Below are positions 17,179 through 47,590 of a stretch of DNA of 64,000 nt, in pieces; position 1 is the first letter of the stretch; each line of letters begins with the position of its first letter. Location: positions 40,300,001-40,364,000 of the forward strand of contig NC_083237.1 in the NCBI RefSeq assembly GCF_032191835.1, in the 5' to 3' direction. Below the pieces are notes generated by a model. That model was given only the letters and a program-made list of their open reading frames with translations. It did no database searches and was not told the DNA's origin. A program made the position numbers and the translations under genes. The DNA comes from Heteronotia binoei. Taxonomy: Eukaryota.

Positions 17179-18454
17179 CATTCTTGTAGTTGCCCTTTTC
17201 TAACACTGCTCAACTCTGAACATTCATTTGTATGTGTTATGTTTATTTAAATAATAAAACAGTATATATAATGAAACTTGATATTGAAGATTAATGTGTT
17301 ATCATTAAATACACACTCTCACACACAAACATACATACATAGTCACCTTCAGAAGAGAGTAAACATCCTTGGGATGCAAAAATAATGCAATCCAGGTGCC
17401 AATCACTAGATTAGTATTATGATTTCAACAGCAAAATCCTTAAAGAAATAGTCTGATATAGCTTGCTGTTGAAGTTCTAATTTCCAAATGCTTCATAAAA
17501 TCATTACATTTTTGGCAAACAATTCCAAAGGTGGTCTACCTGTTTGCCCACTTACTCTTATCTCTTTTTATTGCCTTCTTTTCTTAAACCTAAAATTTCT
17601 CAGCATGATGCTGATTTCTTACAATCCAAGCCATAGAAAATGTGCAGCATTATTTGCTGCTGCTATTTCAACTGAATCTTTCTGCACACGGGAGACCTAA
17701 CCCATATTCCAGAGCAAAAACCTGTGGGATATGTTCACTAACAATCAATTATTTAAACACACCTTGTGCATCTGTGGGAGTTTTCTATCCTCAAGTCATA
17801 AATCTGCTTTATCTAGCTTGAAGAGATGTGACTCAAATACTCAAAACAGCAGACAGGAACAATGCTGAAGTCATTAATTCCTCTTGGGATCTTGTCTTCT
17901 CCCAGATATGATCCTTGGACTGATTTTCAGTGTTCATGTTTTTAAAAGTTAATCTCTGTTACTTTTATTTATAACTCTCTAAGGGAAAGCATATGGACAG
18001 TATTCTATTCAATTGTTCACTGAAATTGGACAAATATAATGTTGAGGACTGGATACCCTGTTCTACATCCTCTTATGTACCAGGGCTTAAATGCTCCAAA
18101 GCAGTGGGCCTTTTTGTTTGAGAAAATGGTGTAAGAGCATAAAGCATATGCCCTTCATGATTCAATTGTTCCATTTCATGTTTTGCCCCTCAGCTGATTT
18201 TTGCTACTAATTTATTTACCGGAGGTTCTACTCATTCATCCCCAACATCCTGTGTAGTTTTCCTCTGGGAGGCAAATCTGCAAAGCTTCTTTCCAAATGG
18301 GTGAATGGCTTAAGATATATCTGAGAAGCTCTACACTCAAATTATAAATTGTAAAATTATATATTAGCTATATCTGGTAGATCAGACATACCAAGTTGCC
18401 TTAGGTTCTGGGTGTTCTCCATTCCAAGAAACATGAAGGGACTTTAGTATTTTT

Positions 18455-18669
18455 GCAAGCCTCCAGGTAGGACCTGGAGATCTTCCACTTTTACAACTTA
18501 TCTCCAGCTGGCAGAGAACAGCTCCCCTGGAGAAAATGGCATCTTTGAAAGGTGAACTCTATGGCATTGTACCATGCTGAGGCCCCTCCCTTCCTCAAAC
18601 CCTACCGTCTCCTGGATCCACCACCCAAAGTCTCCAGGTATTTAACAACACAGACTTGGCAACTCTAGA
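18455..18669. mobile_element. hAT MITE fragment (TAGGGTTGCC-type TIR family)
   Basis: ccaggtaggacctggagatc...cccctggagaaaatggc...ttggcaactcta. Paralogous to 24100-24300, 31050-31250 and 57603-58205. Confidence 0.65.
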
Positions 18670-21053: not shown

Positions 21054-21875
21054 CTATGCTGGGAAATAAGGACCTACCAAATTGCTGTGGTCAAACCAAA
21101 TAGCTGTGTTGTTGAGCCACACCAAATTGCTGTGGTCAAACATACAGTATGACTCACAAAGTAAATATCGATTGTAGATCGCCATTTCATATAGGGAAAA
21201 TGGTCCATGAAAAGGCTGATCTCCCTCCCCCCTATATTTTTCTAATGATTTCATACGCTTGGTATGAAAGAAGCTTGGGAGCTTTCGGTCATGGAACTCC
21301 CAGAGTCACATGCACTTGGGCCCTTTCTCCGCTTTTCAAAAGCATCACTTTTTTAATACTTTCCACATACTATTGCTTAAATACAACTCTAGGTGGGATC
21401 ACAAAGTGGCCTCTTACATTCAGATTTCAAAATATTGCTATTTTCAGATTTAAAAATAAAACTGTAGACCATTTGCAGTGCTTCTAGTAACATGAATACC
21501 AGAGGGAAGGGAAAGTAAATTGGCTACAGTACCATATCTATGGCTCAATCAAGGAAATGAACACAATTCAATTGATAACACCCATCTCTAAATACATGTA
21601 AGCTATGTTGTCCACAGGAAGGAAAAGCATTTTATACAGAGCACAAGTAAGCAGTTTGTAGTATTTTCAAACAGCCTGAGAAATTTGGATATGCATAATA
21701 CTACCATGCAATTGTTCTTCTTCAATTCACAGCTGATCTATGGTGACCCCAAAGGGTTTTCAAGCCAAGATATGTTCAGAGGTAGTTTCCCATTGCCTGT
21801 CACTGCAAATTTCCCCACAATCCTGAAAACATAGCACCTTATCTGTTGCACAGATGTGATAAAGGTCATACAACA

Positions 21876-22820
21876 TTAGTCTATTTGTCTTGAAGAAGGC
21901 CCATTAATGGTTTTTCGAAGGGCATCCTTGAACTCCTGATTCCTCATGCAATATATGACTGGGTTAAGAAGTGGTGTTAGAACTGTATAGAGAACAGAAA
22001 CAAGCTTGTTGGCGTTAACGTTAGTAAGAGCCCTTGGTCGAACATAGATGAAAACGGTGGCAGCAAAGAAAATGGTGACTACCAAAAGATGTGAGGCACA
22101 GGTGGAAAAGGCCTTTCGCTTCCCTTTGGCTGAAGGAATATGCAAGACAGTAGAGATAATGCAGGTATAAGAGGTGATTGTTACAATGAGTGGACCAATG
22201 ATAATAAGCAAGGCCAGCAGGAAGTCAATGAGTTCAGCCAATGACAAGTCAGTGCAGGCTAGATTGAGAAGTGGGGAGACATCACAGAAGAAGTGGTTGA
22301 CAACGTTGGGTCCACAGTAGCTCAAGCGTGAGATGAAGAAGGTCTTTCCTGTTGCTACAAAAAATCCACTTAACCATGAACCGATTGCTAAACGGATACA
22401 GAAATCTTGACTCATTATGGCAGGATAACGCAAAGGGCTACAGATGGCAACATAGCGGTCATAAGCCATAACTGTTAGGAGGGCACACTCTGTGCATGCC
22501 AGAACCAGAAAGAAGAAGAGCTGGGCCATGCAGCCTGTAAAGGAAATATCCATCTTCTGTGTAACAAAGCCTGAAAGCATCTTGGGGACAGTGACTGAGA
22601 CATACCAGATCTCCAGGAAAGAAAAATTTCCCAGGAATATATACATAGGTTTATGAAGCTTGATGTTCACCCAGATTAGTACAATGATGATCAAATTCTC
22701 CAACACTGTTAGGGTGTAGGAAACCAGAAAAAGTGTGAATAAAAAGTGCTGCAGTTTTAAACTTCCTGGAAACCCCACCAAAATGAAAACTGTCACATGT
22801 GACTGGTTTGCCAGGTGCAT
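21876..22820 (-). CDS. Olfactory receptor OR-A, family 6 (OR6B-like), intact 314 aa
   Basis: NQS site, [60 protein letters not shown]. Acceptor cttttcag at about 22848. Confidence 0.95.
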   Translation of the reverse strand: MHLANQSHVTVFILVGFPGSLKLQHFLFTLFLVSYTLTVLENLIIIVLIWVNIKLHKPMYIFLGNFSFLEIWYVSVTVPKMLSGFVTQKMDISFTGCMAQLFFFLVLACTECALLTVMAYDRYVAICSPLRYPAIMSQDFCIRLAIGSWLSGFFVATGKTFFISRLSYCGPNVVNHFFCDVSPLLNLACTDLSLAELIDFLLALLIIIGPLIVTITSYTCIISTVLHIPSAKGKRKAFSTCASHLLVVTIFFAATVFIYVRPRALTNVNANKLVSVLYTVLTPLLNPVIYCMRNQEFKDALRKTINGPSSRQID

Positions 22821-23143
22821 CTTGGATAACTTACTGATGTTGCAGAACTGAAAAGAATATTCAAAGGGAAGATATTATAACCCTATCCATATTGAATGTT
22901 CAAAATCAAACAACATTCTAAATCAAATGCTATATAAAATTATAGCCAATTGTATGTTTATTAAGAAGCCCAGTTTTTGTAACATCTCATTTTTAAAAAA
23001 ATTAGGCCTACATTGAAAGGTGAAAAGCTGTGTAAGTATGTCAACCAGAACAATATAAATAGGATTCAGAATTTTCTTCATCCAAATTCCTCTGCAGATT
23101 TGGAATTCCTAATTGCTCCAATTGTTTCTGAAGTGAAAAACTT

Positions 23144-23285
23144 TAGGAATTCCAATTGTTCTGCTTTTGTATGGAGAATTTTGCAGTTTCTGCTGAAGAG
23201 GGGCGTCGCTGCCGATTAAGGTCAGTGCGAAAACGCCCTAGGAATTCCAATTGTTCTGCTTTTGTACAGAGAATTTTGCAGTTTC
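23144..23285. mobile_element. Remnant of a PIF/Harbinger MITE (right arm only) between duplicated 47-bp flanks
   Basis: 23192-23238 equals the right end of the MITE at 29184-29469. 23144-23190 and 23239-23285 are direct copies of the flank. Confidence 0.8.
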
Positions 23286-23306
23286 CTTTTATGATCCACA
23301 TATTTT

Positions 23307-23348
23307 CCCATCCATCCATCCAACCATCCGTCCATCCATTCATCCATC
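23307..23348 (+). repeat. (CCAT)n microsatellite, paralogous copy at about 29540-29580
   Basis: ccatccatccatccaaccatccgtccatccattcatccatcc. Confidence 0.85.
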
Positions 23349-24549
23349 CACCCACTCATCTGTCCCCCTCTTTCTTTCTATAAAAGAGTAATTGATATTT
23401 TCTGTGCATTTTCTATTTTCTGTGAATAAAAAGTGCTGTGTTTAGGAGAAATTTGGGGGGTGGGGAGGTCACTCTTTACCATTAGTACATAGATATGCGA
23501 CGCTGAAACTATGCTTCTGACCTGGCACTGGGTTGGGGAGGAGAATATTATTACAATTCAAAATTCCTGGTAGTTTGGCCTCTTTTCCCATACTCATGAG
23601 ACAGCATGAGCTGCTGTTATTTTGCAAATAGCACAATCAGGAGGCCCCCTTTGTTTCTAAAATGTGAAGTGTACAGCCATATAATTCTGTCATATTGCCT
23701 CTGACTGCTTCTTGGATGTTCCATGGAAACTTTATATAGCAGGGTGGCAGATTCTTTGACCATCCTGTGACCCCAGCTGATGCCCATATTTGTCATGGAT
23801 ATACTGATCTGAAGTCCAATAACTGAGACTCTAAGAGGAAAATATAATGACAATATTATATAAAATAGATACTAGTACATATGGAATAATAAAGGGGGGG
23901 GAGGAAGCAAGAGCAAAATGGTTAAAAGGGTTACAGAGAAACTATACACTGAGGGGTGGGGGAGGGAGAGAACAAGAAAAGGAATAACACAAGACAGTAA
24001 ACAGAAATCACAGGGAAGATGGCCAAGTTTGGGAAGAAGCAATTGTTTAGAGTTAGAAAAGAAATTACAGGAGCTAAAGGAGAATGAATGATATCAACTT
24101 GGGATGCCAGCCTTTAGGTGGGACCTGGGGATCCCCTGGAATTACAGCTTATCTCCAGACTGCCAAGATCAGTTTCCATGGAGAAAATGGCTGCTTTGAA
24201 GGATGGATTCTATGGCATTATAACCCCACTGAGGTTTCTGGCCTCTCCAGATTCCATCCATAAATTTCTAGGAGCTTCCCAACCTGGATCTAGCAACCCT
24301 ACATCCCCCTTCCCCTGCCAGTGGCCAGGGGGAACCTTGCAACCCTGTCAACTCAATCTGGTGTCATGACTAGGGGGGATTTCACTTCAGCCATGAAGTT
24401 CACTGAAAGACCTTGGGCCAGTCAGTCACCATCTCTCAGTATCATTTTCCCCCAAGGTTTTTTGTGAGGATAAAATAGAGGAGAATTTTAAAAAGACAGA
24501 TAAATGTGAGTACAGAAATATAATTTTTGGGGTGTGTGTGTGTTAACAG

Positions 24550-26300
24550 CCATGCTTGTGTTGCAGAAAAGAAGCTCCTAAGTGTTTAGGAAACACTTGG
24601 CATAAACTCCATGAAAGAAAATAACAATGGCGTAAAATTAAGCATAATCACATACTGTCCCCAAAAGGTAACAATATATAAATGCCACCCCAATGACTGA
24701 AAAGTAAACAAAACAACCCAGCATTCAGATTCAGTTAGCTGGTAGAATTATTAGATAGATCCATCAAGACTGACCTAAAAGTGCATATAAATTTGGATGG
24801 GAGTTCATTAATGCTTGTGACATTGATTTAAAAGACAGTTTTAAAAGATACGATATAAGACAGAGACAAAAAAACCTCTACTATATGGTATAAGAAGAGA
24901 TCACTGTTAAAAAAATTGATTAAAATTAGGCAACAGGAATCTTTCTGTAAAGCTTAAGCAAAGTTATTTCTGTACCCCACAGAGAACAAAGGCAGCTGTG
25001 GGCAGTGGCCTCCTGTCAAATTCACTGAAAAAAGGCAGAAGGCCTTAATAACAGTATAAAAATGGGGAAGCTACAAAATGGAAGACAGGAAGTTGTTTCC
25101 AAAACAGACTGAGGGGGAAATTAAATAGCATGTTCTACAAAAGCAGGAAAAAAGGTCTTTGAGACAGTTAACTGGAAACTAGATCTTTTTTAAAAAGTAA
25201 GAGGGTGCCAAATAACCATACTTGAGTGAAATGAAATAGTGTAAGCATTATGAAATTAAATTAGATTGGAATATTAAAGAGAATTTTAAACTATGAATAG
25301 GTGTATGTTTATTGAGCCAAAACTACGTATAAGGTAGAAAATAATCATATGACAGTTTGTTGAGAGTGTTGCTAGAGCACATAATTACTCCAACATGTTA
25401 AAATACCCAGATACCCACAGAGTGTCAGGCATATAGTCCATTTTGATGTCAATAATTTGGTGCATGTGTATCAGCGATAATGATCACCTGAAAATGCCAG
25501 GGGTGTAAAAGTGTTGCTCATTATGGAAACACCATATTCCAAGATTTTTAAAACATCTCTCAGCTGAGGAATCATTTCTTTCACTGAGTTCTTTCTGAGT
25601 TCATTTCTTTCACTGAGTTCATTGCAGAATGCTCACCAGGAAAAAGCACACATTCTTTTGTAGGAGTAAATTTAAAAATTCTACCAAAATATACATTGTT
25701 TTCAGATTCCAGAAATAAATAGGGTAACATAATATATATATAGTGAAAAATAGTTGATGCAATACTAAAATTAATATAGAATTCTATTTAATATATATAG
25801 GAAAAAGGGGGAGGATATAATAGAAATAGTAAAATGGGAATAATCTTGTCATTAAGGTTTTGTAAGTATTGATATACATTTGCTGTATCTAGCTATAAAA
25901 GTAATTCGTTGCCTATCACAAAATCAGATCATTCACATATTCTTCCCCAGATATGCAGATTAATCTGACCAAAAGAAAATTAGACCTCTATCCTACACAC
26001 CCCAAATTTCCTGTGAGCATTAAATCTATTCTAAATTGACTAAAACAAAATGGGACACCTGCATCCAATATATTAAATTCCTTACAAGGACTGGATATAT
26101 TCTAGGAGGCATGGAGTTGAGAGTTGTTGAGTTAACAGGGAAATGATGGAATGTTCTGAAGAATATATTTATTCAACTCATCCCTCCATTTTTTTAAAAT
26201 GTAAGTAAAAGGAATAGGATTATAAGGAATAAAATAGGCATTGCTTTAAAGCAGAGGTTCTTACCAAGGACCATAATCCAATAGTACCAAATAATAGTGT
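24550..26300. mobile_element. Old, highly decayed LINE (L1-like) remnants, paralogous copy at about 31510-33335
   Basis: A-rich, strand-biased sequence with no open frame. Family assignment is tentative and rests on composition and faint ORF2-like wording. Confidence 0.35.
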
Positions 26301-26549
26301 AGGAGGAAGATATGCCTGACACTCTGTGGGTTTCTGGGTATTTTAACATGTTGGCGTAATTATATGCTCTAGCAGCACTCTCAACAAACTGTCATATGAT
26401 TATTTTCTACCTTATATGTAGTTTTGGCTCAATAAACATACACCTATTCATAGTTTAAAATTCTCTTTTATATACTAATCTAATTTAATTTCATAATGCT
26501 TACACTATTTCATTCCACTCAAGTATATTATATGGTTATTTGGCACCCT
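25202..26549. repeat. About 235-bp inverted duplication (25202-25434 / 26310-26549), paralogous at 32226-32458 / 33344-33584
   Basis: agggtgccaaataaccata...gtgtcaggcatat is the reverse complement of atatgcctgacac...tatggttatttggcaccct, with few mismatches. Confidence 0.9.
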
Positions 26550-27891
26550 GGTAGGAGGAAGGGTGAAAGAATTAGAGAACCAGTGATGCAGTAGAATGGG
26601 CACAGTGAAAAGGGGGACTAAGTAGATCATCTATGATCATCTATGCTACAAATCTTTAGTGAAAGAAAGGTTTCAGTTTACTTACATGGATGATGAAACC
26701 ACAGAAAGTTGATTATTTCCAAAAGTTTGACCCAGAAACAGAGAAGTATAGACAGAAAAGCAAAGACAAAAAGGAGAAATGATTTATACCAAATGAAGTA
26801 TAGAATAAAGGAATAAAAGAATGATTACAAAAAAAGGATGTATGCCATAGATGAAGAATAACACCTCTACACTGGATGAAGAACATGTTGAAGGTGGATG
26901 GTTGTGTATAAGAACATGAGAGACTGATATATATGGTTGTGAATCACACCACTGCTTTTGGAGATGTGCCAGTTATGAAACGACAATAAACATTTTAATG
27001 AACTGTTCTTGGCCTTAACTTATTTTCTCCCTCCTTCTTTTGTCTTACATCGGCTGGAGCAAACTTATACCTCTACAGCACACATTGAGAATCATCCTGT
27101 CAAAATGAGACATATATATTATAGACATATATATTAGACATATTATTGACCTATTGCTCTGTGTCTGTGTCCACATAGCAAATGTGTAAAGGGTAGTACA
27201 GAAAGAAGGAGGGGCAAATGTCACAAATGACACACACATGCACACCAAAGCACAGTGAAAAGCAACCAAGAACAAGGGGTCTCAAGTTGGGAATCCTAGC
27301 CATCAGATTCATAGTATAATTCCATACAGTATTAGTTCAGTGTAAAACAATTAAAATGAGTTGCATTAGGCTGCAGAAATTCTGAATAGCATTACATACT
27401 GACTGACTGACTGACTGACATACTCTCTAGGCCCTTGTGATGGTTCACTCAAAGAAAACTGGTGTCTTCCACATCTAGTGCCATATAATAAAGCTGTTAA
27501 AAGGTTTCTCTTAGTTGCCAGAGGTTGCAGTTAGTTACCAGATCCACAATATAGTCCTATGCAGAATTATTCCAGTATAAACAAATTAAAATAAATTTGC
27601 ATGATGTGAAGTGTCCCTGAATAGGACTGTACCACTAGTCATTTAACTCTCTAAACTCTGGTGATGGCTCATCCAAAGAGATGTGTTTAGCAATCTAAAA
27701 TGCAGATAGTCAGAAAGGATTCTAATGCATTCTCTCAAGAGTTATACAGCTTTGAATATTATGTTACATGGAGCACAAGTAATCAGTGTTGTAGTAATTT
27801 TTTTAACTGTCTAACAAATCTACATATGTGTAACACTGGAATACAAATTTCTATGGTATCTGAGAATGTAGCATCTTTTCTGTATTGTTGC

Positions 27892-28857
27892 CTAAATAGA
27901 GCTCTTAGAACAATAGCCTATTTGTCTTAAAGAAGATCCATTAATGGTTTTTCTGAGGGCATCCTTGAATTCTTGATTCCTCATACAATAAATAACTGGG
28001 TTAAGAAGTGGTGTTAGAACTGTATAGACAACAGACACAATTTTGTGGGCATTAACAGAGGTGAGAGCCCTTGGTCGGGCATAGATGAAAATGGTGGCAG
28101 CAAAGAAAACGGTGACTACCAAAAGATGTGAGGCACAGGTGGAAAAGGCCTTTCGCTTCCCTTTGGCTGAAGGAATGTGCAAGACAGTAGAGATAATACA
28201 GCTATAAGAAGTGATTGTTACAATGAGTGGTCCAATGAGAATGAGCAAGGCCAGCAGGAAGTCAATGAGTTCAACGAATGACAAATCAGTGCAGGCTAGA
28301 TTGAGAATTGGGGAGACATCACAGAAGAAATGGTTGATGATGTTGGGTCCACAGTAGCTCAAGCGTGAGATGAAGAAGGTCTTTCCTGTTGCTACAAAAA
28401 ATCCACTTAACCATGAACCGATTGCTAAACGGATACAGAAATCTTGACTCATTATGGCAGGATAACGCAAAGGGCTACAGATGGCAATATAGCGGTCATA
28501 AGCCATAACTGTTAGGAGGGCACACTCTGTGCATGCCAGAACCAGAAAGAAGAAGAGCTGGGCCATGCAGCCTGTAAAGGAAATATCCATCTTCTGTGTA
28601 GCAAAGCCTGAAAGCATCTTGGGGACAGTGACTGAGACATACCAGATCTCCAGGAAAGAAAAATTTCCCAGGAATATATACATAGGTTTATGAAGCTTGA
28701 TGTTCACCCAGATTAGTACAATGATGATCAAATTCTCCAACACTGTTAGGGTGTAGGAAACCAGAAAAACTGTGAATAAAAAGTGCTGCAGTTTTAAACT
28801 TCCTGGAAACCCCACCAGAATGAAAACTGTCACATGTGACTGGTTTGCCAGTTGCAT
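27892..28857 (-). CDS. Olfactory receptor OR-B, family 6 (OR6B-like), intact 321 aa, chimeric
   Basis: Full OR motif set. The N-terminal half is nearly identical to OR-A and the C-terminal half nearly identical to OR-C. Confidence 0.95.
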   Translation of the reverse strand: MQLANQSHVTVFILVGFPGSLKLQHFLFTVFLVSYTLTVLENLIIIVLIWVNIKLHKPMYIFLGNFSFLEIWYVSVTVPKMLSGFATQKMDISFTGCMAQLFFFLVLACTECALLTVMAYDRYIAICSPLRYPAIMSQDFCIRLAIGSWLSGFFVATGKTFFISRLSYCGPNIINHFFCDVSPILNLACTDLSFVELIDFLLALLILIGPLIVTITSYSCIISTVLHIPSAKGKRKAFSTCASHLLVVTVFFAATIFIYARPRALTSVNAHKIVSVVYTVLTPLLNPVIYCMRNQEFKDALRKTINGSSLRQIGYCSKSSI

Positions 28858-29183
28858 CTTAGATAACTTACTGATGTTGCAGAACTGAAAAAAATATTCA
28901 AAGGGAAGATATTATAACCCTATCCATATTGAATGTTCAAAATCAAACAACATTCTAAATCAAATGCTATATAAAATTATAGCCAATTGTATGTTTATTA
29001 AGAAGCCCAGTTTTTGTAACATCTCATTTTTAAAAAAATTAGGCCTACATTGAAAGGTGAAAAGCTGTGTAAGTATGTCAACCAGAACAATATAAATAGG
29101 ATTCAGAATTTTCTTCATCCAAATTCCTCTGCAGACTTGGAATTCCTAATTGCTCCAATTGTTTCTGAAGTGAAAAACTTTAG

Positions 29184-29469
29184 GGGCATTTTCGCACTGA
29201 CCTTAATCGGTAGCGACGCCACTCTTCAGCGCACAGGATCTGCCCGGATTTCGCACCAATTGCCGCGGAGCATCCGGAAGAGCCAGAAAGTCCTGCGGCT
29301 TTTGCGGCGCAAATGGAAACTGGTTTTTGGCGGTTTCCATTTGCGCCTCAAAAGCCGCGGGACTTTCCAGCTCTTCTGGGTGCTCCACGGCAATTGGTGC
29401 GAAATCCGGGCAGATCCTGCGCGCTGAAGAGGGGCGTCGCTGCCGATTAAGGTCAGTGCGAAAACGCCC
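29184..29469. mobile_element. PIF/Harbinger-type MITE, 286-bp near-perfect palindrome
   Basis: GGGCATTTTCGCACT...AGTGCGAAAACGCCC termini, 3-bp TSD TAG (29181-29183, 29470-29472). The arms pair almost to the centre. Confidence 0.85.
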
Positions 29470-31560
29470 TAGGAATTCCAATTGTTCTGCTTTTGTACAG
29501 AGAATTTTGCAGTTTCCTTTTATGATCCACATATTTTCCCATCCATCCATCCAACCATCCATCCAGCCATTCATCCATCCACCCACTCATCTGTCCCCCT
29601 CTTTCTTTCTATAAAAGAGTAATTGATATTTTCTGTTCTTTGGCATTTCATGAATGCACATGTACATATCGGTGAACTAATAAACGCAAAAGCAATGTTC
29701 ATGCTATTGCATTGACAATTGTTACTGATACTGTCTTTACATGGAGCTTTACAAATGTGTACAAGCACATATACATATCTGTAAAATGAAAACCACCTTG
29801 ATGTAGTCATACATATGATGGCATGTTTTACCTTGTGCAAGGTTTTATTATTCAAAGACTTTCCATTCTAGTACAGAGAGTGCATGTGTCATAATCCTTA
29901 CGTTCTAACATCACCTTCCTGGCATGGTATGTTTTCTTCACATGCCTTTTAAGAATAATCTATGGAAACAAGAGGGGCCTCACAAGACTCATAGTGGGGA
30001 AGCCCATATACCTCCCATTGTTGAGCCTGATGAGGCTCCAGGTCCCACTACCTAGCATTAAGCCTTGCTGCCAGCATCTTCCTTTGCTACTGGACTGCCA
30101 GCATCCTCTGCTGTGCCCAGGATTGGAATGCCTAGGCCCAGAAGAGCAGCCAGCATCCTCTCCTATGGCTGGGCTCACAGCCACTGCTGCCATATTCTTC
30201 CACTTGAATTGGCTGCTGAACTGGAGGAGCTTCCTAAGTGCATTTCAATGTGCAGGAAAAGACAACTGTATTTAGGAGAAATTTAACCCCCCTATAGCTT
30301 TTATTTTCAGTTTAATTTTTTTTTTCCTGCAAACTGGAGGAGTTCCACAAGTTGGCAGGAAAATCTGTTTATCACTGATTCACATATTTAGGTATCACCA
30401 ATTCGGGGGGTGGGGAGGTCACTCTTTACCATTAGTACATAGATATGCGACTCTGAAACTATGCTTCTGACCTGGCACTGGGTTGGGGAGGAGAATATTA
30501 TTACAATTCAAAATTCCTGGTAGTTTGGCCTCTTTTCCCATACTCATGAGACAGCATGAGCTGCTGTTATTTTGCAAACAGCACAATCAGGAGGCCCCCT
30601 TTGTTTCTAAAATGTGAAGTGTACAGCCATATAATTCTGTCATATTGCCTCTGACTGCTTCTTGGATATTCCATGGAAATTGAATATAGCAGGGTGGCAG
30701 ATTCTTTGACCATCCTGTGACCCCAGCTGATGCCCATATTTGTCATGGATATACTGATCTGAAGTCCAATAACTGAGACTCTAAAAGGAAAATATAATGA
30801 CAATATTATATAAAATAGATACTAGTACATATGGAATAATAAAGGGGGGGGGGGAGGAAGCAAGAGCAAAATGGTTAAAAGGGTTACAGAGAAAATATAC
30901 ACTGAGGGGTGGGGGAGGGAGAGAACAAGAAAATGAATAACACAAGACAATAACAGAAATCACAGGGAAGATGGCCAAGTTTGGGAAGAAGCAATTGTTT
31001 AGAGATAGAAAAGAAATTACAGGAGCTAAAGGAGAATGAATGATATCAACTTGGGATGCCAGCCTTTAGGTGGGACCTAGGGATCCCCTGGAATTACAGC
31101 TTATCTCCAGACTGCCAAGATCAGTTTCCATGGAGAAAATGGCTGCTTTGAAGGATGGATTCTATGGCATTATAACCCCACTGAGGTTTCTGGCCTCTCC
31201 AGATTCCATCCATAAATTTCTAGGAGCTTCCCAACCTGGATCTAGCAACCCTACATCCCCCTTCCCCTGCCAGTGGCCAGGGGGAACCTTGCAACCCTGT
31301 CAACTCAATCTTGTGTCATGACTAGGGGGGATTTCACTTCAGCCATGAAGTTCACTGAAAGACCTTGGGCCAGTCAGTCACCATCTCTCAGTATCATTTT
31401 CCCCCAAGGTTTTTTGTGAGGATAAAATAGAGGAGAATTTAAAAAAAGACAGATAAATGTGAGTACAGAAATATAATTTTTTTGGGGTGTGTGTGTTAAC
31501 AGCCATGCTTGTGTTGCAGAAAAGAAGCTCCTAAGTGTTTAGGAAACACTTGGCATAAAC

Positions 31561-31626
31561 ACCTGAGCCTGCTCCGGCGGGGGAGGGCGGGATATAAATA
31601 AAATTTTACATTACATTACATTTTAC
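31561..31626 (+). mobile_element. Short 5'-truncated LINE (L2-like) 3' end, present only in duplication unit 2
   Basis: cctgagcctgctccggcgggggagggcgggatataaataaaa plus an (ACATT)n tail, flanked by AAAC. Absent at the paralogous site near 24605. Confidence 0.65.
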
Positions 31627-34600
31627 AAACTCCGTGAAAGAAAATAACAATGGCATAAAAAATAAGCATATTCACATACTGTCCTCAAAAGGTAACAATA
31701 TATAAATGCCACCCCAATGACTGAAAAGTAAACAAAACAACCCAGCATTCAGATTCAGTTAGCTGGTAGAATTATTAGATAGATCCATCAAGACTGACCT
31801 GAAAGTGCAAATAAACTTGGATGGGAGTTCATTAATGCTTGTGACACTGATTTAAAAGACAGTTTTAAAAGATACGATAGAAGACACAGAGACAAAAAAC
31901 CCTCTACTATATGGTATAATAAGAGATCACTGTTAAAAAAATTGATTAAAATAGGCAACAGGAATCTTTCTGTAAAGCTTAAGCAAAGTTATTTCTGTAC
32001 CCCACGGAGAACAAAGGCAGCTGTGGGCAGTGGCCTCCTGTCAAATTCACTGAAAAAGGCAGAAGGCCTTAATAACAGTATAAAAATGGGGAAGCTACAA
32101 AATGAAAGACAGGAAGTTGTTTCCAAAACAGACTGAGGGGGAAATTAAATAGCATGTTCTACAAAAGCAGGAAAAAAGGTCTTTGAGACAGTTAACTGGA
32201 AACTAGATCTTTTTTAAAAAGTAAGAGGGTGCCAAATAACCATACTTGAGTGAAATGAAATAGTGTAAGCATTATGAAATTAAATTAGATTGGAATATTA
32301 AAGAGAATTTTAAACTATGAATAGGTGTATGTTTATTGAGCCAAAACTACGTATAAGGTAGAAAATAATCATATGACAGTTTGTTGAGAGTGTTGCTAGA
32401 GCACATAATTACTCCAACATGTTAAAATACCCAGATACCCACAGAGTGTCAGGCATATAGTCCATTTTGATGTCAATAATTTGGTGCATGTGTATCAGCG
32501 ATAATGATCACCTGAAAATGCCAGGGGTGTAAAAGTGTTGCTCATTATGGAAACACCATATTCCAAGATTTTTAAAACATCTCTCAGCTGAGGAATCATT
32601 TCTTTCACTGAGTTCTTTCTGAGTTCTTTCTGAGTTCATTTCTTTCACTGAGTTCATTGCAGAATGCTCACCAGGAAAAAGCACACATTCTTTTGTAGGA
32701 GTAAATTTAAAAATTCTACCAAAATATACATTGTTTTCAGATTCCAGAAATAAATAGGGTAACATAATATATATATAGTGAAAAATAGTTGATGCAATAC
32801 TAAAATTAATATAGAATTCTATTTAATATATATAGGAAAAAGGGGGAGGATATAATAGAAATAGTAAAATGGGAATAATCTTGTCATTAAGGTTTTGTAA
32901 GTATTGATATACATTTGCTGTATCTAGCTATAAAAGTAATTCGTTGCCTATCACAAAATCAGATCATTCACATATTCTTCCCCAGATATGCAGATTAATC
33001 TGACCAAAAGAAAATTAGACCTCTATCCTACACACCCCAAATTTCCTGTGAGCATTAAATCTATTCTAAATTGACTAAAACAAAATGGGACACCTGCATC
33101 CAATACATTAAATTCCTTACAAGGACTGGATATATTCTAGGAGGCATGGAGTTGAGAGTTGTTGAGTTAACAAGGAAATGATGGAATGTTCTGAAGAATA
33201 TATTTATTCAACTCATCCCTCCATTTTTTTAAAATGTAAGTAAAAGGAATAGGATTGTAAGGAATAAAATAGGCATTGCTTTAAAGCAGAGGTTCTTACC
33301 AAGGACCATAATCCAATAGTACCAAATAATAGTGTAGGCGGAAGATATGCCTGACACTCTGTGGGTTTCTGGGTATTTTAACATGTTGGCGTAATTATAT
33401 GCTCTAGCAACACTCTCAACAAACTGTCATATGATTATTTTCTACCTTATATGTAGTTTTGGCTCAATAAACATACACCTATTCATAGTTTAAAATTCTC
33501 TTTTATATACTAATCTAATTTAATTTCATAATGCTTACACTATTTCATTCCACTCAAGTATATTATATGGTTATTTGGCACCCTGGTAGGAGGAAGGGTG
33601 AAAGAATTAGAGAACCAGTGATGCAGTAGAATGGGCACAGTGAAAAGGGGGACTAAGTAGATCATCTATGATCATCTATGCTACAAATCTTTAGTGAAAG
33701 AAAGGTTTCAGTTTACTTACATGGATGATGAAACCACAGAAAGTTGATTATTTCCAAAAGTTTGACCCAGAAACAGAGAAGTATAGACAGAAAAGCAAAG
33801 ACAAAAAGGAGAAATGATGTATACCAAATGAAGTATAGAATAAAGGAATAAAAGAATGATTACAAAAAAAGGATGTATGCCATAGATGAAGAATAACACC
33901 TTTACACTGGAAGAAGAACATGTTGAAGGTGGATGGTTGTGTATAAGAACATGAGAGACTGATATATATGGTTGTGAATCACACCACTGCTTTTGGAGAT
34001 GTGCCAGTTATGAAACGACAATAAACATTTTAATGAACTGTTCTTGGCCTTAACTTATTTTCTCCTTCCTTCTTTTGTCTTACCATCGGCTGGAGCAAAC
34101 TTATACCTCTACAGCACACATTGAGAATCATCCTGTCAAAATGAGACATATATATTATAGACATATATATTAGACATATTATTGACCTATTGCTCTGTGT
34201 CTGTGTGCACATAGCAAATGTGTAAAGGGTAGTACAGAAAGAAGGAGGGGCAAATGTCACAAATGACACACACATGCACACCAAAGCACAGTGAAAAGCC
34301 ACCAAGAACAAGGGGTCTCAAGTTGGGAATCCTAGCCATCAGATTCATAGTATAATTCCATACAGTATTAGTTCAGTGTAAAACAATTAAAATGAGTTGC
34401 ATTAGGCTGGAGAAATTCTGAATAGTATTACATACTCTCTAGGCCCTTGTGATGGTTCACTCAAAGAAAACTGGTGTCTTCCACATCTAGTGCCATATAA
34501 TAAAGCTGTTAAAAGGTTTCTCTTAGTTGCCAGAGGTTGCAGTTAGTTACCAGATCCACAATATGGTCCTATGCAGAATTATTCCAGTATAAACAAATTA

Positions 34601-34924
34601 AAATAAATTTGCATGATGTGGAGTGTCCCTGAATAGGACTGTACCACTAGTCATTTAACTCTCTAAACTCTGGTGATGGCTCATCCAAAGAGATGTGTTT
34701 AGCAATCTAAAATGCAGATAGTCAGAAAGGATTCTAATGCATTCTCTCAAGAGTTATACAGCTTTGAATATTATGTTACATGGAGCACAAGTAATCAGTG
34801 TTGTAGTAATTTTTTTAACTGTCTAACTAATCTACATATGTGTAACACTGGAATACAAATTTCTATGGTATCTGAGAATGTAGCATCTTTTCTATATTGT
34901 TGCCTAAATAGAGCTCTTAGAACA

Positions 34925-35598
34925 TTAGCCTATTTGTCTTAAAGAAGATCCATTAATGGTTTTTCTGAGGGCATCCTTGAATTCTTGATTCCTCATACAA
35001 TAAATAACTGGGTTAAGAAGTGGTGTTAGAACTGTATAGACAACAGACACAACTTTGTGGGCATTAACAGAGGTGAGAGCCCTTGGTCGGGCATAGATGA
35101 AAATGGTGGCAGCAAAGAAAACGGTGACTACCAAAAGATGTGAGGCACAGGTGGAAAAGGCCTTTCCCTTCCCTTTGGCTGAAGGAATGTGCAAGACAGT
35201 AGAGATAATACAGCTATAAGAAGTTATTGTTACAGCGAGTGGTCCAATGAGAATGAGCAAGGCCAGCAGGAAGTCAATGAGTTCAATGAATGACAAATCA
35301 CTGCAGGCTAGATTGAGAATTGGGGAGACATCACAGAAGAAGTGGTTGATGATGTTGGGTCCACAGTAGCTCAAGCATGAGATGAAGAAGGTCTTTCCTG
35401 TGGCTATGATAAAACCACTCAGCCATGAACTGGCTTCTAAAAGGATACAAAAATCTTGGCTTATTATGACAGGATAACGCAAAGGGCTACAGATGGCAAC
35501 ATAGCGGTCATAGGCCATAACTGTTAGGAGGGCACACTCTGTGCATGCCAGAACCAAAAGAATAAGAGCTGGGCCATGCAGCCTGTGAAGGAAATTCA
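34925..35598 (-). pseudogene. OR-C: 5'-truncated, frameshifted family 6 OR pseudogene (TM3-TM7 only)
   Basis: Homology to OR-A/B stops at about 35598 (ggaaat|tcagct). There is a 1-bp deletion at about 35556-35559 relative to OR-A/B and an earlier TAA at the C-terminus. The 5' part was not found elsewhere in the window. Confidence 0.9.
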
Positions 35599-36658
35599 GC
35601 TCATGCCTTGCCACGCCACAACAGCGGCCGTAGATGGGGGGGGGCACATTTGCCTCTCTGCCGGAGGAGGAGACGACGCGTTTCCTGGCCATCCGGGGTT
35701 TCCTGGAGGGTGGAGCGCCAGGACTATAAGAGTCCTGGCCCCTCCCTGAGCCACGCGCTTGCTTTGTGGCTCTCGGCTGGGCAGTTCCTTTCATGGTGCT
35801 GTGAGTGTGCCGGGAGCCAAGAGCCTCATGTCGGCGAGTGTCGGGCTGCTGAGAGCCTCCTGTCTGCAACCTGGGGAGCGGAAAAGGCCTGTCAGGAGCA
35901 ACGGGCGGCCAGCGGCTCATTGCCTTGCGTCAGAGTCAGTCCCTTACTTGGGATTGCAGGCTTGTCGGGGCTTGGGAGTTTAACGGAGGGTGGTAACAGG
36001 CTTTTGGTTGTTCCACACACTTTGCCAGCGGAGGGAGTGTTGGGGCTTGCAGCCCAGTTGTGAGAAGGTTGCTTTGCAGCTTCTTGTTTTCTACTCCCAC
36101 CCATCCCCTTCCTTGTGTTTTTGGTAGGGGTTTATTCAGTGGAGAAGGGTGCCCTCTCAGTGCTTTTGCTTCCCCCCCTCCACCCCCCTTTTTCAACTGA
36201 CATGGGGCCAAAGAAGGGGCAGGGTAAGTCCAAGGGGAAGCAGCCTGCCAATGCACCTGGGAAGAGGGGGCAGAAAACTGCCCCTGATGATGGTGCTGAG
36301 GAAGCGAATCGCTTGCGGCTGGCTATCATTGATAAGCTGGGGGCCTTAAAACGGCAAAGGGGCACTGCTGGGGAGACATCAGGATGGACTGGGTGCTCTA
36401 GGGTCACTGGACGGTCTGGCACTACGATGTTTGAATGGGAGGTACTTGCACGGCTCTCTGCATTGCAAGACAGTGGAGGCAGCGGGGAGGAGTCTGGAGT
36501 GCAACCTTTGGAGAAGGAACCTGATGTTGAGGAGGAAGACGAAGGTGGTGTGGAAGTACTGGAACTTATGGTCAAGCCAGAGCGGCCGGAGCAGTTGGCA
36601 CCAGTGGCTGTTGTGGTGGCGCCACCTGTCAGCATAGGGTTCATGGACGCTCCAACAA

Positions 36659-37141
36659 TGGATAGACTCTTTTCATTTGAAAATAAGTTTCATTTATTGG
36701 ATACATACATGTTACTGCTATGAGAGTTCTTTGAAAGTGATAAGGTACACACACACTAGCTGGCCTTTATGGCCCAGGATCAAAGCTAGGGGGTTTAAAT
36801 CATTCTCACAATACAGTTGCATTCTACTTCTAAAAGGTGCGAGGTTCACACACTGATATCTTGCATAGCTAGCCGCGTCCGTTCTCTCTCCCCCACAGGC
36901 AGCCTTGCAGCGGCTGAAAGCCGGTCACATAGTTTGCACTTCAAACACCTTTACAGCTCTTGGCGCCAAGCTCCTCTCCCCCCCCCCACTCCCCCTGCTC
37001 TCACAGCTGAATTATAGCTACAGTTCACAGGGTTAGTAAGCAATACAACAATTTAGGCATTCTGGTTAGTATCAATTTGAACACAAGCTGACACCACCCA
37101 GGGTTGAGGGTAAGTATTGGCAGCTACAACAAGTGAAACAT
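36659..37141 (-). mobile_element. Solo-LTR-like insertion inside the Ngaro gag-like ORF
   Basis: TG...CA ends and minus-strand AATAAA at 36693-36698. Removing it restores ccaacaATGGccttggg. Confidence 0.6.
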
Positions 37142-38819
37142 GGAGGACTTCCGGTTTATGGCGTGGTGCGGCTGAGCCTTTCCCGAGCTCCGGGAACTGC
37201 ATTGTTTTGCTGGGCATTTGGGGGGACTTTCCGAAGGGAAGTGCCCCCTAAAGAAAAGTCAGAAGACGTATCGCAGTTTGGGGAGCTTCTTGGGATTGGG
37301 GAGGGGGGGAGCGGAGGCTCCTCTTTCAATCCCAGCCTGTCCCCGCAGCCGATGCCTAGCAACACTTTAGTGACCAACCGGGCCACCGGAGAAGGGAACG
37401 AACAGAGACAATATCTTCTATCCATTACAAGGAACGACTAAAAGAATAGAAACACGAAGTTTTGTTCTCACCTATTTTCAACGGCGGCGGAGACCCAGCG
37501 GCCGAGCTAGTGCCGAGCTCGGTCGGGAGGCGCAGACTGAGAGCAGAGAGCGGAGAGCAGAAAGAAGCGGATGAATGGCGAACGAGATTGTTGGCAAGAA
37601 ATACAGCAGGTACGAGACTATTTTGGGCTAAGGCGGAGTTAGGGACGGTGCATTTGTGCTGGAGGAAGATAGAAGACTAAAAGATAAAATTTAGTCGCTT
37701 TAGCCAGGTGGAGACGGGGAAGGTGGAACCGAATTGGAAAGACAGGGAAGCTGACGACGAACAGCGGTCGTAATGGCGGAGGTTGTATGATGAAGCGAAG
37801 GGGCTGTCAGTCTGAGTGAGTTATTGGAGCCGGAGAAACGGATAGAAAGGTTTAAGGTGAACAATATAATATAATACAACAGTAGAGGAAGAAAAAGGAA
37901 GAAGATATAAGAAAGGAAGAACAGAAGGGAAAGGAGAAATTGACTGGATAAATCGTCGGACTTTGACATGTGGAGAGTAGATTAATGGCGGCGTTGCTGT
38001 GATTTAAGTGAAAGTACGAGACGGAAAGAGAGAGGCGTTTGAACATATATAGGATTTTTGAAAACTATTTAATGGTCTAGAATGGTGTAAAAAGAAAGAA
38101 AGAAATTTAAGCACAGTACTTGGGAGATATAACTTGGCAAAGGGTGGGGAGAGGGTTTTTAGCAGCGGTTGCGCTGCGGCTGTCTCCCCACTGAAGATGG
38201 GCTTTTGACTGTTTGGAAGTTGTTGGAACAATTTGTGTGGTCAAGGATAACAAAGACAAAGACAATAACTGCAGAAAGAAAGGAAACACGAAAGAAGGTA
38301 TCTTATTGTGGAAGAAGAAGAGCAGGAGAAGGAGAAGGAGAAAGAGGAAGACGCAAGAAAACATGAACTTAATAATTAATATGTTGTAGAAAGGAAAGTT
38401 AAACTGAAAGGTAGAGAACTGGTTAATGTTGTGTATATAATTGTTGAATGTTTAACTGCTCCATATATAATTGCTGTATAGTGGTAAGGAAAGTATTATA
38501 TATTTGATGTAATAACTGATATAATAGAAAAAATAGTTAATTCTGTAAGGGTAAATTAAGATATTAGGGTAACTGTAATTAATTAATGTACTAGGAGATC
38601 AAGGTAACTGTGTCACTTAAGGAATAGAAATTAATGTAATGAATTGAATAGTTGTTGATTATATAAGGATTTGGGATTTGGGAAATTAACTGGATTAATT
38701 GATTAGTTAATTAATTAATTAATTAAGCATACTCCCTGAGTAAGGAGACGGAGGAGGTAAATATAGGAAGTAAGAGAATTCTGTTAATAATTGTTTCAGA
38801 AAGTATCTAAGAAACAGAA

Positions 38820-39830
38820 ATGGGTCCTAAAAAGTTTGGGCAAGGTACCCCCTCACCAACTCCTGGGGGAGGGGGGAAACCAATACCAGAAACAACAAAT
38901 CAAGATGCTATTGAGAAACTGCAAAATATAGTGACGGCTGGTTTTAGGCAAAACCAAGAAGCGTTAGAGGCGATGAAAGTAGACTTAATGGGTCAGATAA
39001 TAAAAACAAACAGACAAGTTGAGGAATTCCAAAAACAGCTATTAGCGAATACTCAACAAGTTCACAGTTTGGCTGCTAAAGTGGATAAAATAGTCGAAAG
39101 TGAGAAGGAGGTGGCCAATATAACCAGAGAAAATAAAGCAACTGTGACCAAATTGGAGGAAAGAGTAATAAAGTTAGAGATGGAAAAAGCAGCGTATATA
39201 TTACGCTTCCAAAATATACCAGAGGAAAAGGACGAAAATATAATAGAGAAAATTTTGGAACTGCTGACCTTTGAAGATGATCAATGGCTGGAGGAGGGAA
39301 GGAGAGATATTGAGTGGGCCAAAAGAATTTCCTCCAGCTATACGAGGAAACATAATTTGGCAAGAGAGGTACAAGTTAAATTTACCCATCTCACGACATG
39401 TGAAAAAATCTTGAAAAAAGTTAAAGAGCAGGGATTGAAGTGGAAGGATGCTAACATAAAAGTGCTGAAAGATGTGCCCTGGGAGGTCCGCCAACGTAGA
39501 ACTAAATATCGTAGACTAACAACCTGGTTGATGAGACATTCAGTGCAATTTAGATGGTTAATTCCGGAAGGGATTTTCTTCATATATCAAACTAGAAGAC
39601 ATAACATAACATCGTTGGAAAAATTAGAGGAATTCTGGGATCAATATGTGGATCTAAGTAGCCATGAATCTGAGACGGGAGATGAACAAGAAGAACAAGA
39701 AGAACAAGACTGTCGGAGTAAATCAGAACAGGGTGCTGTGCAGAAGTTGTGGAAAGGAGGAATAAAGACAAGGACCCAAACTAAAAAAGTTCAGAAAGTA
39801 GTATCTGATAGTATAGACTTGTTAAAATGA
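38820..39830 (+). CDS. L1 ORF1p (coiled coil, RRM, CTD), intact 336 aa
   Basis: Heptad-rich N-terminal half, LRFQNIPEE, REVQVKF, IKVLKDVP, FRWLIPEG. The stop overlaps the ORF2 start (ATGA at 39827-39830). Confidence 0.9.
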   Translation: MGPKKFGQGTPSPTPGGGGKPIPETTNQDAIEKLQNIVTAGFRQNQEALEAMKVDLMGQIIKTNRQVEEFQKQLLANTQQVHSLAAKVDKIVESEKEVANITRENKATVTKLEERVIKLEMEKAAYILRFQNIPEEKDENIIEKILELLTFEDDQWLEEGRRDIEWAKRISSSYTRKHNLAREVQVKFTHLTTCEKILKKVKEQGLKWKDANIKVLKDVPWEVRQRRTKYRRLTTWLMRHSVQFRWLIPEGIFFIYQTRRHNITSLEKLEEFWDQYVDLSSHESETGDEQEEQEEQDCRSKSEQGAVQKLWKGGIKTRTQTKKVQKVVSDSIDLLK

Positions 39831-42800
39831 ATACCAGGACTGAAATGCAAATTATATCAGTTAACGTTAACGGCCTAAATGACCCAGGAAAAAGAAGAAG
39901 GATATTCCAACAACTTAAAAAAACATCTTCTTCAATAATTTGTCTACAGGAGACGCATATTCAAGAAAAAGATACAAAATATCTGCGAAATGAGAAATTA
40001 GGTATGCTCTACCATTCATCTGATCCAGAAAGAAAAAAGAAAGGGGTAGCTATATATGTATCCAAGTCTATCCAATCTAGTTGTTTATATACGGATAATA
40101 AGGGAAGAATAGTGATGGTAGAGATAGAGTATTGCGGAAATAAATTGATACTAGTTAACATTTATGCCCCTAATGAAAACCTCGCAAAATTTTACAAAAC
40201 CCTGCATAAAAAATTGATGGAATTCGAACCTAAGAATTGTTGCATTATAGGCGATTATAACGCAGTCTTCGACACAGAAAAAGATAAAAAATTTGAAGAA
40301 CAAAAAAAAAGGAAGCTGCGAAGTAGTTTGCCAAAAGATTTCTTAAAATTAGCTGATGAATTTAATTTATTAGATGCGTGGAGAACTAAGAATCCATCAA
40401 CCAAGGATTATACTTACTATTCATCTGCCCACAAGTGCTGGTCGAGAATCGATATGTGTTGGCTGTCGGCCGACTTAATGTTATCAGTTCGACAAGCGGA
40501 TATCCTACCTAGTACGTACGCTGATCACAATCCAATCCAGATCAATTTATTAGGAACTTTGAAGAACTCACGGTGGACTCTTAATTTGCAAATTCTTAAA
40601 GAAACAAAATTTCTGGAGGCAACAAAGAAAGAAATAAAGGAATTCTTCCGGCACAACTTAACCAAGGATACCAGCATGCACATCATTTGGGATACATTTA
40701 AGGCCTTCTTTCGTGGGATTGCAATAAAATATACAGCAGGAAGGAAAAGAGAACGTTTGAAGACCTATAAGGAACTGGTTCAAAAATTAAGTGAACAAGA
40801 GAAGCAGCTAAAGATAAAGAATATAGAAGAAATAAGATTAAAGATTTCGGCTATTCAACACCAAATTAACTTAATATTAATGGAAGAAGTAGAAAAGAAG
40901 ATGAAATGGATGAGACAAACTCACTTTGAAAGTGCAAATAAAGCCAGCCGATGGCTAGCATACAAGCTAAAAAAGGAAAGAAGTAAAAAAAATCATAAAA
41001 TTACTTAAAGATGAAGAAGGGAAAGAGACAACACAAATCAATCAGATGAAAACAATAATTCAAAAGTTTTACCAAAAATTATATAAAGGTCAAGAAATCC
41101 CTAACCAGTTACAAGAAGAATATATAGCAAAGACTAAATTAAAACAGCTGACACAAGAACAAAAAGAAAAATTAGAAGCACCAATAACCATGCATGAGAT
41201 TGGGGAAGCGATTAACCAACAAAAGTCGAATAAAGCACCAGGACCGGATGGCCTCCCCATTGAATTTTATAAAGTGTTTGAAGAAGAACTGCTTATCCCG
41301 TACAAAAACGTAATTGAAGACACACAAAAAAATTATGGAATACCAGCATCTTGGAAGGAAGCACTTATTACCTTGATACACAAAGAAGGTACAGATCCAG
41401 CGGAAGTAAAGAACTATAGACCTATTTCCCTGCTAAACAGTGATTATAAAGTTTTTGCTACTGTGCTGGCAAACAGACTTTAAAAAGTCATAAATGCGGT
41501 TGTCCATGAAGACCAAACAGGCTTCGTGCCAGGTAGACAAATGAAACAGAATGTAAGATTTCTAATGAATGTTATTGAATACTATAAGGAACATCCTGAG
41601 AAGCAGGTGGCACTAATATTTGTGGACGCAGAAAAAGCCTTCGACAATGTTAATTGGAATTTTATATTGAAATCGTTGGAGGCAGTAGGTTGCGGAGGAA
41701 ACTTTCGTAGACTGGTGGAAACTATATACACAGAACAAAACGCAAGGATCAGCTTTAACAATACCAAAACAGACTTGATTGCGATAGCGCAGGGTACAAG
41801 ACAAGGTTGTCCCCTATCGCCACTATTATTTATACTAACGTTAGAGCTTTTAATGCAAAGAATAAGGAACGAAGATAGAATAAGAGGTACTAAAATTAGG
41901 GGAGAGGAGCTGAAGATTCAAGCCTTTGCAGATGATCTGTTGTGTACTTTAGAAGACCCAAACTCATCTATTGAACAATTGAAAGAAACATTTAAACAAT
42001 ATGGATATGTATCGGGACTCAAGATTAATGTACAGAAAACGAAATTTTTCACAAAAAATATGAATAAAGAACAAATTAATCAATTTGAAACCCAGTCAGA
42101 ATTTGCATATGGGAAAAAAAGTGAGATATTTAGGAATTCAAATGACTAATGACCTTAAAGACTTGTATCGGGACAATTATGAGAAATTAATAAAAGAAAT
42201 TCAAGAGGACTTAAGCAGATGGGAAGATTTGCATATTTCACTTCTGGGCAGGATTGCAACTATTAAAATGAATGTGTTGCCAAGAGTATTGTTCCTTTTC
42301 CAGATGATTCCTATTATGCTCCCGAAGAAATTTTCCCAACAGATGAATAAAATAATTCTATCATTTATTTGGCAGAACAAAAAGCCCAGAATTAGATTGA
42401 AAGTACTGCAAGACAGTAAACTGAGAGGTGGGTTGGCCTTACCAGAATGGAACTTGTATCATAAGGCTAGTCGTATAGTTTGGCTAATAGAGTGGATTAC
42501 ATTGAGAAATAAAAGAATGTTGACCATGGAGGGGGCAGGTTTGGGGAGAGGATGGCACGGATATCTTTGGTACCAAAACCCTCCACCAAACAGTTTGTTT
42601 TGGAGGCATGAAATAAGAAAATCCCTCTATAGGGCTTGGATGGATATTAGAAAGTTCTATTCCTACACTCCATTATGGATATCACCAGTGGAGGCTCATA
42701 CCCACCCCAATCTTTATGACTGGAATAATTTAAGTGACTACCAAAACTTATTAGACAAACAGAACAACTTGCGAACGGGAGAAATGGCCCAATTAGACTG

Positions 42801-43557: not shown

Positions 43558-43790
43558 TAGAAACATTATAAATAAATCTCTGTTCGTACCCGGGATGTTT
43601 GGGAGTATGTTTGTGGGGTGGAGGGAGTTTGGATTTAGCTGGAGGATGTATGGAATGTGTTTGTATATGTATTGTATGTATTTGTAAGTATTTGTGTTCC
43701 TACTTGTTGTATTTGTTTTTGCACTTGGGTGTAATAAACATGGTTTAAAATGTAAAAAACAACAACAACAACAACAACAACAAGTGAAAC

Positions 43791-47272: not shown

Positions 47273-47349
47273 GCTCGGCTAACCTTTTCTTAACAAGGTT
47301 TGGCCGTGACAGGCATGTTTGGTTCTTGGTTGACTGTTTTTTCCTTCCA

Positions 47350-47590
47350 GGTTCGCCAGGAGAGGCTGCGTATCCTCATCTACAGGCACAGTTTTGTTTT
47401 CTGGGCAGCCCACTTTGCTTGGAGGTCTTCAGTTGGTTTGCAATTGGGCCTCAGTGAGGGGGCCACAGTTGTGTGGCAGGGTCACTGTGGGCTTCATTGG
47501 CCCGGCCTGCTGCCTCTCTTATTTCATGGGAGGCATGGTTCGCCCCCTGATATTTTGGACATACACCTGGGGGGGGGAATGACCTTGGGT
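47350..47590 (+). pseudogene. Ngaro SGNH hydrolase-like ORF, 5' part
   Basis: ILIYRHSFVFWA...WQGHCGLHW...PPDILDIHLGG followed by (frameshifted) GNDLG, resembling SGNH blocks I-III. Confidence 0.7.

Follow-up and report, generated by a model that had tools for sequence, protein, structure and literature searches.

Genes of the locus

The window (the whole stretch of Heteronotia binoei DNA that was analysed, 64 kb in length) contains six open reading frames for olfactory receptors (ORs), of which four belong to a single OR6B1-like subfamily and lie on the minus strand. No run of N and no scaffold gap was found in it. In a profile search, OR-A, OR-B, the OR-C remnant and OR-D all match Pfam 7tm_4. 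The main features, in window coordinates, are the following.

21876–22820, minus strand: OR-A, intact, 314 residues, OR6B1-like; the A-type parent
22305–28341, no strand assigned: duplication unit 1, 6037 bp, consisting of the A 5' part, the A–B spacer and the B 3' part (self-BLAST and global alignment)
27892–28857, minus strand: OR-B, an intact hybrid olfactory receptor of 321 residues; Pfam 7tm_4, 177.5 bits over residues 33–304, the cut-off being 27
27892–28341, minus strand: C-type 3' part of OR-B, beginning at ECL2 and running to the C-terminus; identity 441/450 with C, about 90% with A
27913–27915, minus strand: OR-B codon homologous to the ancestral stop; read as Tyr because of a B-private change at 27913, so that the protein is seven residues longer
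28342–28389, minus strand: switch interval, codons 157–172, from the end of TM4 to the start of ECL2 (strict interval 28342–28364)
28390–28857, minus strand: A-type 5' part of OR-B; only five nucleotides differ from A over nt 1–493
28858–29184, minus strand: proximal upstream flank of OR-B; 324/327 identical to the A upstream flank, 22821–23147
28342–35353, no strand assigned: duplication unit 2, 7012 bp, consisting of the B 5' part, the B–C spacer and the C 3' part
29185–30404, no strand assigned: segment present in unit 2 only, about 1 kb; palindrome and replacement block
34925–35595, minus strand: OR-C remnant, codons 92–314 of the C-type parent, the 5' third gone; pseudogene
35556–35557, minus strand: 1-bp deletion in OR-C, at codon ~105 in TM3, shifting the frame relative to A and B
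60773–61711, minus strand: OR-D, the intact next-closest paralog, used as outgroup; its ortholog is Paroedura L003:3577

OR-B is an uninterrupted single-exon reading frame with the attributes of a seven-helix olfactory receptor of family 6 (OR6B1/OR6A2-like), taken here as a length of about 310–320 residues, seven helices and the motifs PMY-FLGN, MAYDRY, KAFSTC and NP-IY. It keeps every invariant column of a 31-sequence alignment, amongst them P58-M59-Y60, D121-R122, K236-C241 and N286-Y290. Helices are predicted at residues 21–51, 58–87, 94–127, 138–165, 194–225, 231–259 and 270–293; the structure model from which they come has low confidence (pLDDT 55) and was used for the helix boundaries alone, which are the usual GPCR ones. 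The nearest named proteins, 83–89% identical, are the ‘olfactory receptor 6B1-like’ proteins of Gekko, Paroedura and Eublepharis. The peptides that an earlier, sequence-only reading of this DNA had quoted from OR-A, OR-B and OR-C are all found as stated in the three reading frames. Changes private to OR-B are known at five positions.

28488: V124I
28330: synonymous
28223: T212I, to an A-like state
28041: V273I
27913: loss of the ancestral stop, with seven additional residues

OR-B is probably a working receptor, since it is intact and retains all residues that are invariant in 31 relatives. The description of OR-B as an intact hybrid holds for its frame, its 7tm_4 match and its invariant residues, although intactness is only weak evidence of function. 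The long-term dN/dS is 0.25–0.45 in both lineages. For the time since the duplication, the two informative comparisons each give a value of about 1, with no more than 5 and 8 changes to count, too few to speak for purifying selection on OR-B.

OR-C had been called dead, and two lesions confirm this. Its homology to A and B begins abruptly at 35595, beside unrelated GC-rich sequence (the cut being at 35595/35596), and the 1-bp deletion at 35556/35557 disrupts what follows. Codons 1–91 have no match anywhere in the window by BLASTN or TBLASTN; the idea that a transposon inserted within the window and simply displaced the 5' third was therefore rejected, as the missing part is not found there. 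In OR-C, residues are also replaced at columns that are invariant or near-invariant elsewhere (M136I and R165C). The remnant is embedded in a 331-residue open frame (34925–35920, minus strand) whose first ~108 codons, with the ATG, come from the GC-rich replacement sequence, and an existing gene call at this place gives a 197-residue product (L001:1340-1933) without TM1, TM2 and part of TM3. With OR-B intact and OR-C truncated and frameshifted, the locus would again have two working genes of this type.

A change of parentage inside OR-B

The sequence-only reading held that OR-B is of the OR-A type from the N-terminus to TM4 and of the OR-C type from ECL2 onwards. This agrees with a nucleotide comparison of all three genes over the part of the coding sequence in which they are homologous. 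On the 5' side of the switch there are 20 diagnostic sites at which A and B agree and none at which B and C agree, so that all 20 of 20 are A-type; on the 3' side, B and C agree at 39 sites and A and B at six (39/45 C-type). The maximum chi-square is 43.3 (Fisher p = 8e-12), a value reached in 0 of 5000 permutations (p <= 2e-4). The best breakpoint falls between 28365 and 28341, which by site pattern gives a strict interval of 28342–28364, or codons 165–172. At 28365, however, the base in C is private, and the A/B base is present in every outgroup. The change in C may be later than the exchange, so that 28342–28389 (codons 157–172), the interval originally proposed, is the correct conservative one. 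In the structure model of OR-B the switch is located where TM4 ends and ECL2 starts. One site in the C-type half departs from the pattern: codon 212 (position 28223) encodes Ile in OR-B and in A but Thr in the C-type genes of both Gekko and Paroedura, which points to a parallel change or to a later conversion from A over a very short tract.

The flanks were also said to change hands, the upstream one being that of A and the downstream one that of C, and they do. The upstream flank agrees with that of A at 324/327 positions and the downstream flank (27438–27891) with that of OR-C at 450/454, each an identity of 99.1%; the downstream flank of OR-A could not be aligned to that of OR-B or OR-C.

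Separate maximum-likelihood trees of the two parts are discordant; a single topology for both would have contradicted a hybrid origin. For the 5' part, A and B are joined with 100% bootstrap, with C outside. For the 3' part, B and C are joined, again with 100% bootstrap, and group with Gekko P0004 and Paroedura 10001, while OR-A groups with Gekko P0003 and Paroedura 17406, to which its 3' half is orthologous (the latter gene being L003:17406). A single in-register switch together with discordant trees is what is expected of a duplication product of NAHR.

The orthologous loci of two other geckos carry no hybrid copy. Gekko japonicus has two tandem genes, P0004 followed by P0003, 10.2 kb apart (L005:10001-10942 and L002:10001-10945). 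In Paroedura picta the order is the D-ortholog, the C-type gene and the A-type gene (the last two at L003:10001-10942 and 17406-18347), in the same order and orientation as in Gekko japonicus. Between the two genes at the Gekko and Paroedura sites there is neither a third OR nor an assembly gap. The split between A and C is older than the gekkonid genera concerned and, as the orthologous sites have two genes each, the ancestral state is two genes and OR-B is the extra copy.

Tandem duplication and the origin of OR-B

By self-BLAST, 21859–28584 is colinear with 27896–35595, with an offset that rises from 6037 to 7023 bp. OR-A with its upstream sequence is paired with OR-B and its upstream sequence, the A–B spacer with the B–C spacer, and the 3' part of B with that of C. 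The two units thus paired, 22305–28341 and 28342–35353, stand head-to-tail and have 5909 of 6010 aligned bases in common in a global alignment, an identity by substitutions of about 98–99%. The units meet in frame within OR-B, at a junction that is seamless and in register and has neither inserted nor templated bases. The parental paralogs are in tandem and in the same orientation on either side of the hybrid, with the spacer doubled colinearly between them.

Divergence between the units is much the same in five segments (0.88–2.0%), which indicates a similar age throughout: 0.97% (5/516) for the 5' coding parts of A and B, 0.92% for the upstream flank, 1.88% for the spacer (a value inflated near indels), 0.88% for the downstream flank and 2.0% (9/450) for the 3' coding parts of B and C. 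The contrast between 5/516 and 9/450 in the coding parts is small, concerns few counts and was judged without a formal test. Along the unit, differences per window are somewhat uneven, from 0/489 to 12/428.

The best explanation, to which we give a probability of about 0.82, is that non-allelic recombination, that is, an unequal crossover, between the older paralogs A and C made the hybrid OR-B. The sequence-only reading had proposed the same, and all five of the predictions that follow from it are seen: colinear duplication of the spacer, an in-frame switch, discordant trees, units of similar age and relatives with two genes. It is supposed that the ancestral gecko locus consisted of two tandem OR6B1-like genes on the same strand, the C-type gene being followed by a spacer of ~5–6 kb and then by the A-type gene. 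Within the Heteronotia lineage, pairing would have been between the A gene on one chromatid and the C gene on the other, and a crossover would have taken place inside the short stretch of near-identity at codons 157–172. The duplication product would then have had the order C, spacer, B, spacer, A, with B being a hybrid of the ‘anti-Lepore’ type. From A would have come the promoter-proximal flank of OR-B and codons 1 to ~165; from C, codons ~172 to the end and the 3' flank. Homology-driven unequal exchange is recognised by a tandem-duplication junction of this kind, placed in frame at corresponding positions of two paralogs, and the exact process was presumably a meiotic crossover. It counts against the crossover reading that the identical stretch at the switch, 23–48 bp, is short for classical NAHR. 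Both lesions of OR-C lie 5' of the proposed crossover point, so that its death before the event and its death after it are indistinguishable. The dS between copies is 0.009–0.019, compared with 0.12–0.20 to the Gekko orthologs; together with a substitution divergence of ~1–2%, this suggests that the event was recent, perhaps a few million years ago at assumed rates.

It could be argued instead that a three-gene array is older and has been homogenised by one or more long gene-conversion tracts with the copy number unchanged, the A 5' part, spacer and B 3' part having been written onto the B 5' part, spacer and C 3' part, or the reverse. Conversion is clearly active in this gene pair (over the 5' ~390 nt, in three genera), and the unevenness of unit divergence noted above would also suit such an origin. 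However, the tract would have to be 6–7 kb long and mostly non-coding, and its ends would have to coincide exactly with homologous in-frame points in two genes, whereas the tracts in Gekko and Paroedura are confined to coding sequence between old flanks of 65–80% identity, and both of these outgroup genera carry two genes rather than three. We consider this origin improbable. In the same way, OR-B does not have the attributes of an ordinary gene-conversion mosaic (copy number unchanged, tract limited to the gene, flanks older), because one gene more is present than in the outgroups and the duplication covers 6–7 kb, the whole spacer included.

Little probability attaches also to a tandem duplication by homology-guided replicative template switching (break-induced or microhomology-mediated replication). 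The shortness of the identity at the junction, 23–48 bp, would be natural for it, as would the palindrome and the replaced segment in the upstream part of unit 2, complexity of this type being met with replicative mechanisms. On the other hand, the junction is seamless and in register without inserted or templated bases, and the complexity is some 330–1550 bp from the OR-B start codon, away from the junction, and may be later. Crossover and template switching give an identical product, and the two are inseparable from sequence alone.

The slightest chance is that the assembly is at fault, the true locus being A and C only and two haplotypes having been placed in tandem through a false C-to-A join. 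The units differ by only about 1–2% plus indels, as alleles of a highly heterozygous lizard could too. The exact OR-B protein is on record in the reference assembly GCA_032191835.1 only (CM063339.1, in 40,319,892–40,336,857, reversed), and public sequence is uninformative at the junction: no RNA run contains this stretch, two contig-level runs of one sample hold 5–6% of the sampled words, the run pieces listed at 97% likeness all fall on a repeat at 31057–31174, and the depth of the 28201–28400 bin is not assignable to A, B or C. Internal evidence nevertheless makes an artefact unlikely, in that a false overlap would span sequences only ~90% identical outside the 23–48 bp, the window has no Ns or scaffold gaps, changes private to OR-B, the loss of the stop codon among them, lie on either side of the junction, and unit 2 contains about 1 kb of extra, structurally complex sequence. 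Finally, OR-C is not a recent partial copy of OR-B, since its ICL2–TM4 block differs from A/B at 17/93 nt and, at nt 460 and 463, has the C-type states that are also found in the C-type genes of the two outgroup genera, Gekko and Paroedura.

The region upstream of OR-B is structurally unlike that of OR-A from 330 bp before the ATG, as seen in the unit alignment, a rearrangement that could affect expression. A near-perfect palindrome of 286 bp (29184–29469, 88.8% self-complementary) is present in unit 2 only, and 29637–30399 of that unit (763 bp) stands in place of 44 bp (23406–23449) of unit 1. The window has no second copy of the extra ~1 kb, nor was a clean target-site duplication apparent; tandem-repeat expansion was rejected as its source, the only array being a small CCAT one that occurs in both units. 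In each spacer copy (25202–26549 and 32226–33584) two inverted repeats of ~240 bp, 93% identical to each other, are separated by about 870 bp, an arrangement that looks like a foldback or terminal-inverted-repeat element predating the duplication.

What the hybrid combines, and comparable systems

According to the sequence-only reading, the hybrid joins A-type TM3 and TM4 to a C-type TM5–TM7. The C-type half and the A-type ICL2/TM4 stand; TM3 does not, its DNA being identical in A, B and C apart from the lesions of OR-C. OR-A and OR-B differ at five nucleotides (four residues) over codons 1–168, and at 17 residues over codons 173 to 314. In Gekko, Paroedura and Heteronotia alike, the A-type and C-type genes of a species are near-identical over CDS nt ~22–390, identity over the 5' ~390 nt being 96–100% within species as against ~90% between species. 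The Gekko pair has no difference at all over nt ~22–390; the probability of all 48 differences falling downstream of it by chance is 2e-11. The 3' boundary of the homogenised tract is common to the three genera, at nt ~391–401, where ICL2 and TM4 start; correspondingly, the OR-C remnant differs from A at three positions over nt 274–400 and then at 17 over nt 401–493.

This pattern is best read as concerted evolution of the 5' ~390 nt by short-tract gene conversion, given that the flanks in Gekko and Paroedura are only 65–80% identical; for the same reason, NAHR followed by loss of a parent was rejected as a source of the homogenised 5' halves in these two genera. The ancestral C gene was probably A-like up to codon ~133. 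It follows from the homogenisation within species that OR-B would differ from ancestral C essentially by the A-type ICL2–TM4 block, about nine residues (positions 134, 136, 143, 145–147, 154, 155 and 165, some of them private to C). With the 5' ~390 nt homogenised within each genus, the hybrid is less of a new combination than had been claimed for it.

A broader and more tentative view, which we hold to be doubtful, is that an unequal-crossover hybrid is displacing a parent here, OR-B keeping or rescuing the C-type ECL2 and TM5–TM7, at a locus with a conserved exchange boundary at nt ~391–401. If this were true, two things could maintain the boundary: selection favouring binding halves that differ, or a barrier to heteroduplex formed by the divergent TM4 block. 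OR-B would then be the sole copy in which the barrier block has been swapped.

There is a human precedent for a hybrid of this kind. NAHR between the tandem genes OR8U8 and OR8U9 has given the fusion OR8U1; such events have been proposed as a route to rapid OR diversification, and a hybrid OR may gain new odorant-binding properties (Hasin et al. 2008, PMC2570968). As with OR8U1, recombination within the coding sequence of two tandem OR paralogs of the same orientation gave an in-frame hybrid. Unlike OR8U1, a deletion product in which the fusion replaces both parents, the gecko OR-B is the reciprocal duplication product, lying between both parents; the spacer has been duplicated and one parent, OR-C, has decayed. 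Haemoglobin anti-Lepore and the red/green opsin hybrids have the same arrangement of parent, hybrid and parent, formed from misaligned tandem paralogs with one switch point. These, however, are human polymorphisms or disease alleles, whereas OR-B is in the reference genome of a gecko and its units have diverged by ~1–2%. Short-tract gene conversion in ORs likewise makes mosaic genes, and has been active on this same pair over CDS nt ~22–390, but leaves copy number and spacer unchanged, whereas 6–7 kb has been duplicated at the OR-B locus.

The mechanism proposed for OR-B is thus a textbook one, known from human ORs, and the current understanding of OR evolution is unchanged by it. The interest of OR-B is as a clean natural case, resolved to the base, of a repertoire gaining a gene that was already a new combination at birth. 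The locus has the further advantages that intact outgroup loci are available for comparison and that one parent is visibly decaying. The halves of A, B and C-type differ in defined blocks, namely at about nine residues of ICL2/TM4 and at 17 others between ECL2 and the tail, so that ligand tuning could be compared directly. Both sexual and parthenogenetic lineages belong to the H. binoei species complex, in which the presence or absence of OR-B could act as a structural marker.

Some features of the surrounding DNA may be added. The short interspersed repeat mentioned above occurs once per spacer copy (31057–31174 and 24105–24222), with a further copy of 77% identity downstream of OR-A (18454–18571); in the two public runs, the word depth of the copy at 31057–31174 is very high, with sums of up to ~30,000. 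The interval from D to C is about 5.5 kb in Paroedura as against about 25 kb in Heteronotia. Between OR-C and OR-D there is a nest of retroelements (35596–53400), in which three elements can be named.

38820–43557, plus strand: L1-like element, with ORF1, endonuclease and RT zinc-binding domains
44634–45746, plus strand: RVT_1 (reverse transcriptase) open reading frame
48633–51863, minus strand: LTR-type element, with protease, RT and a Tf2-type SH3 domain
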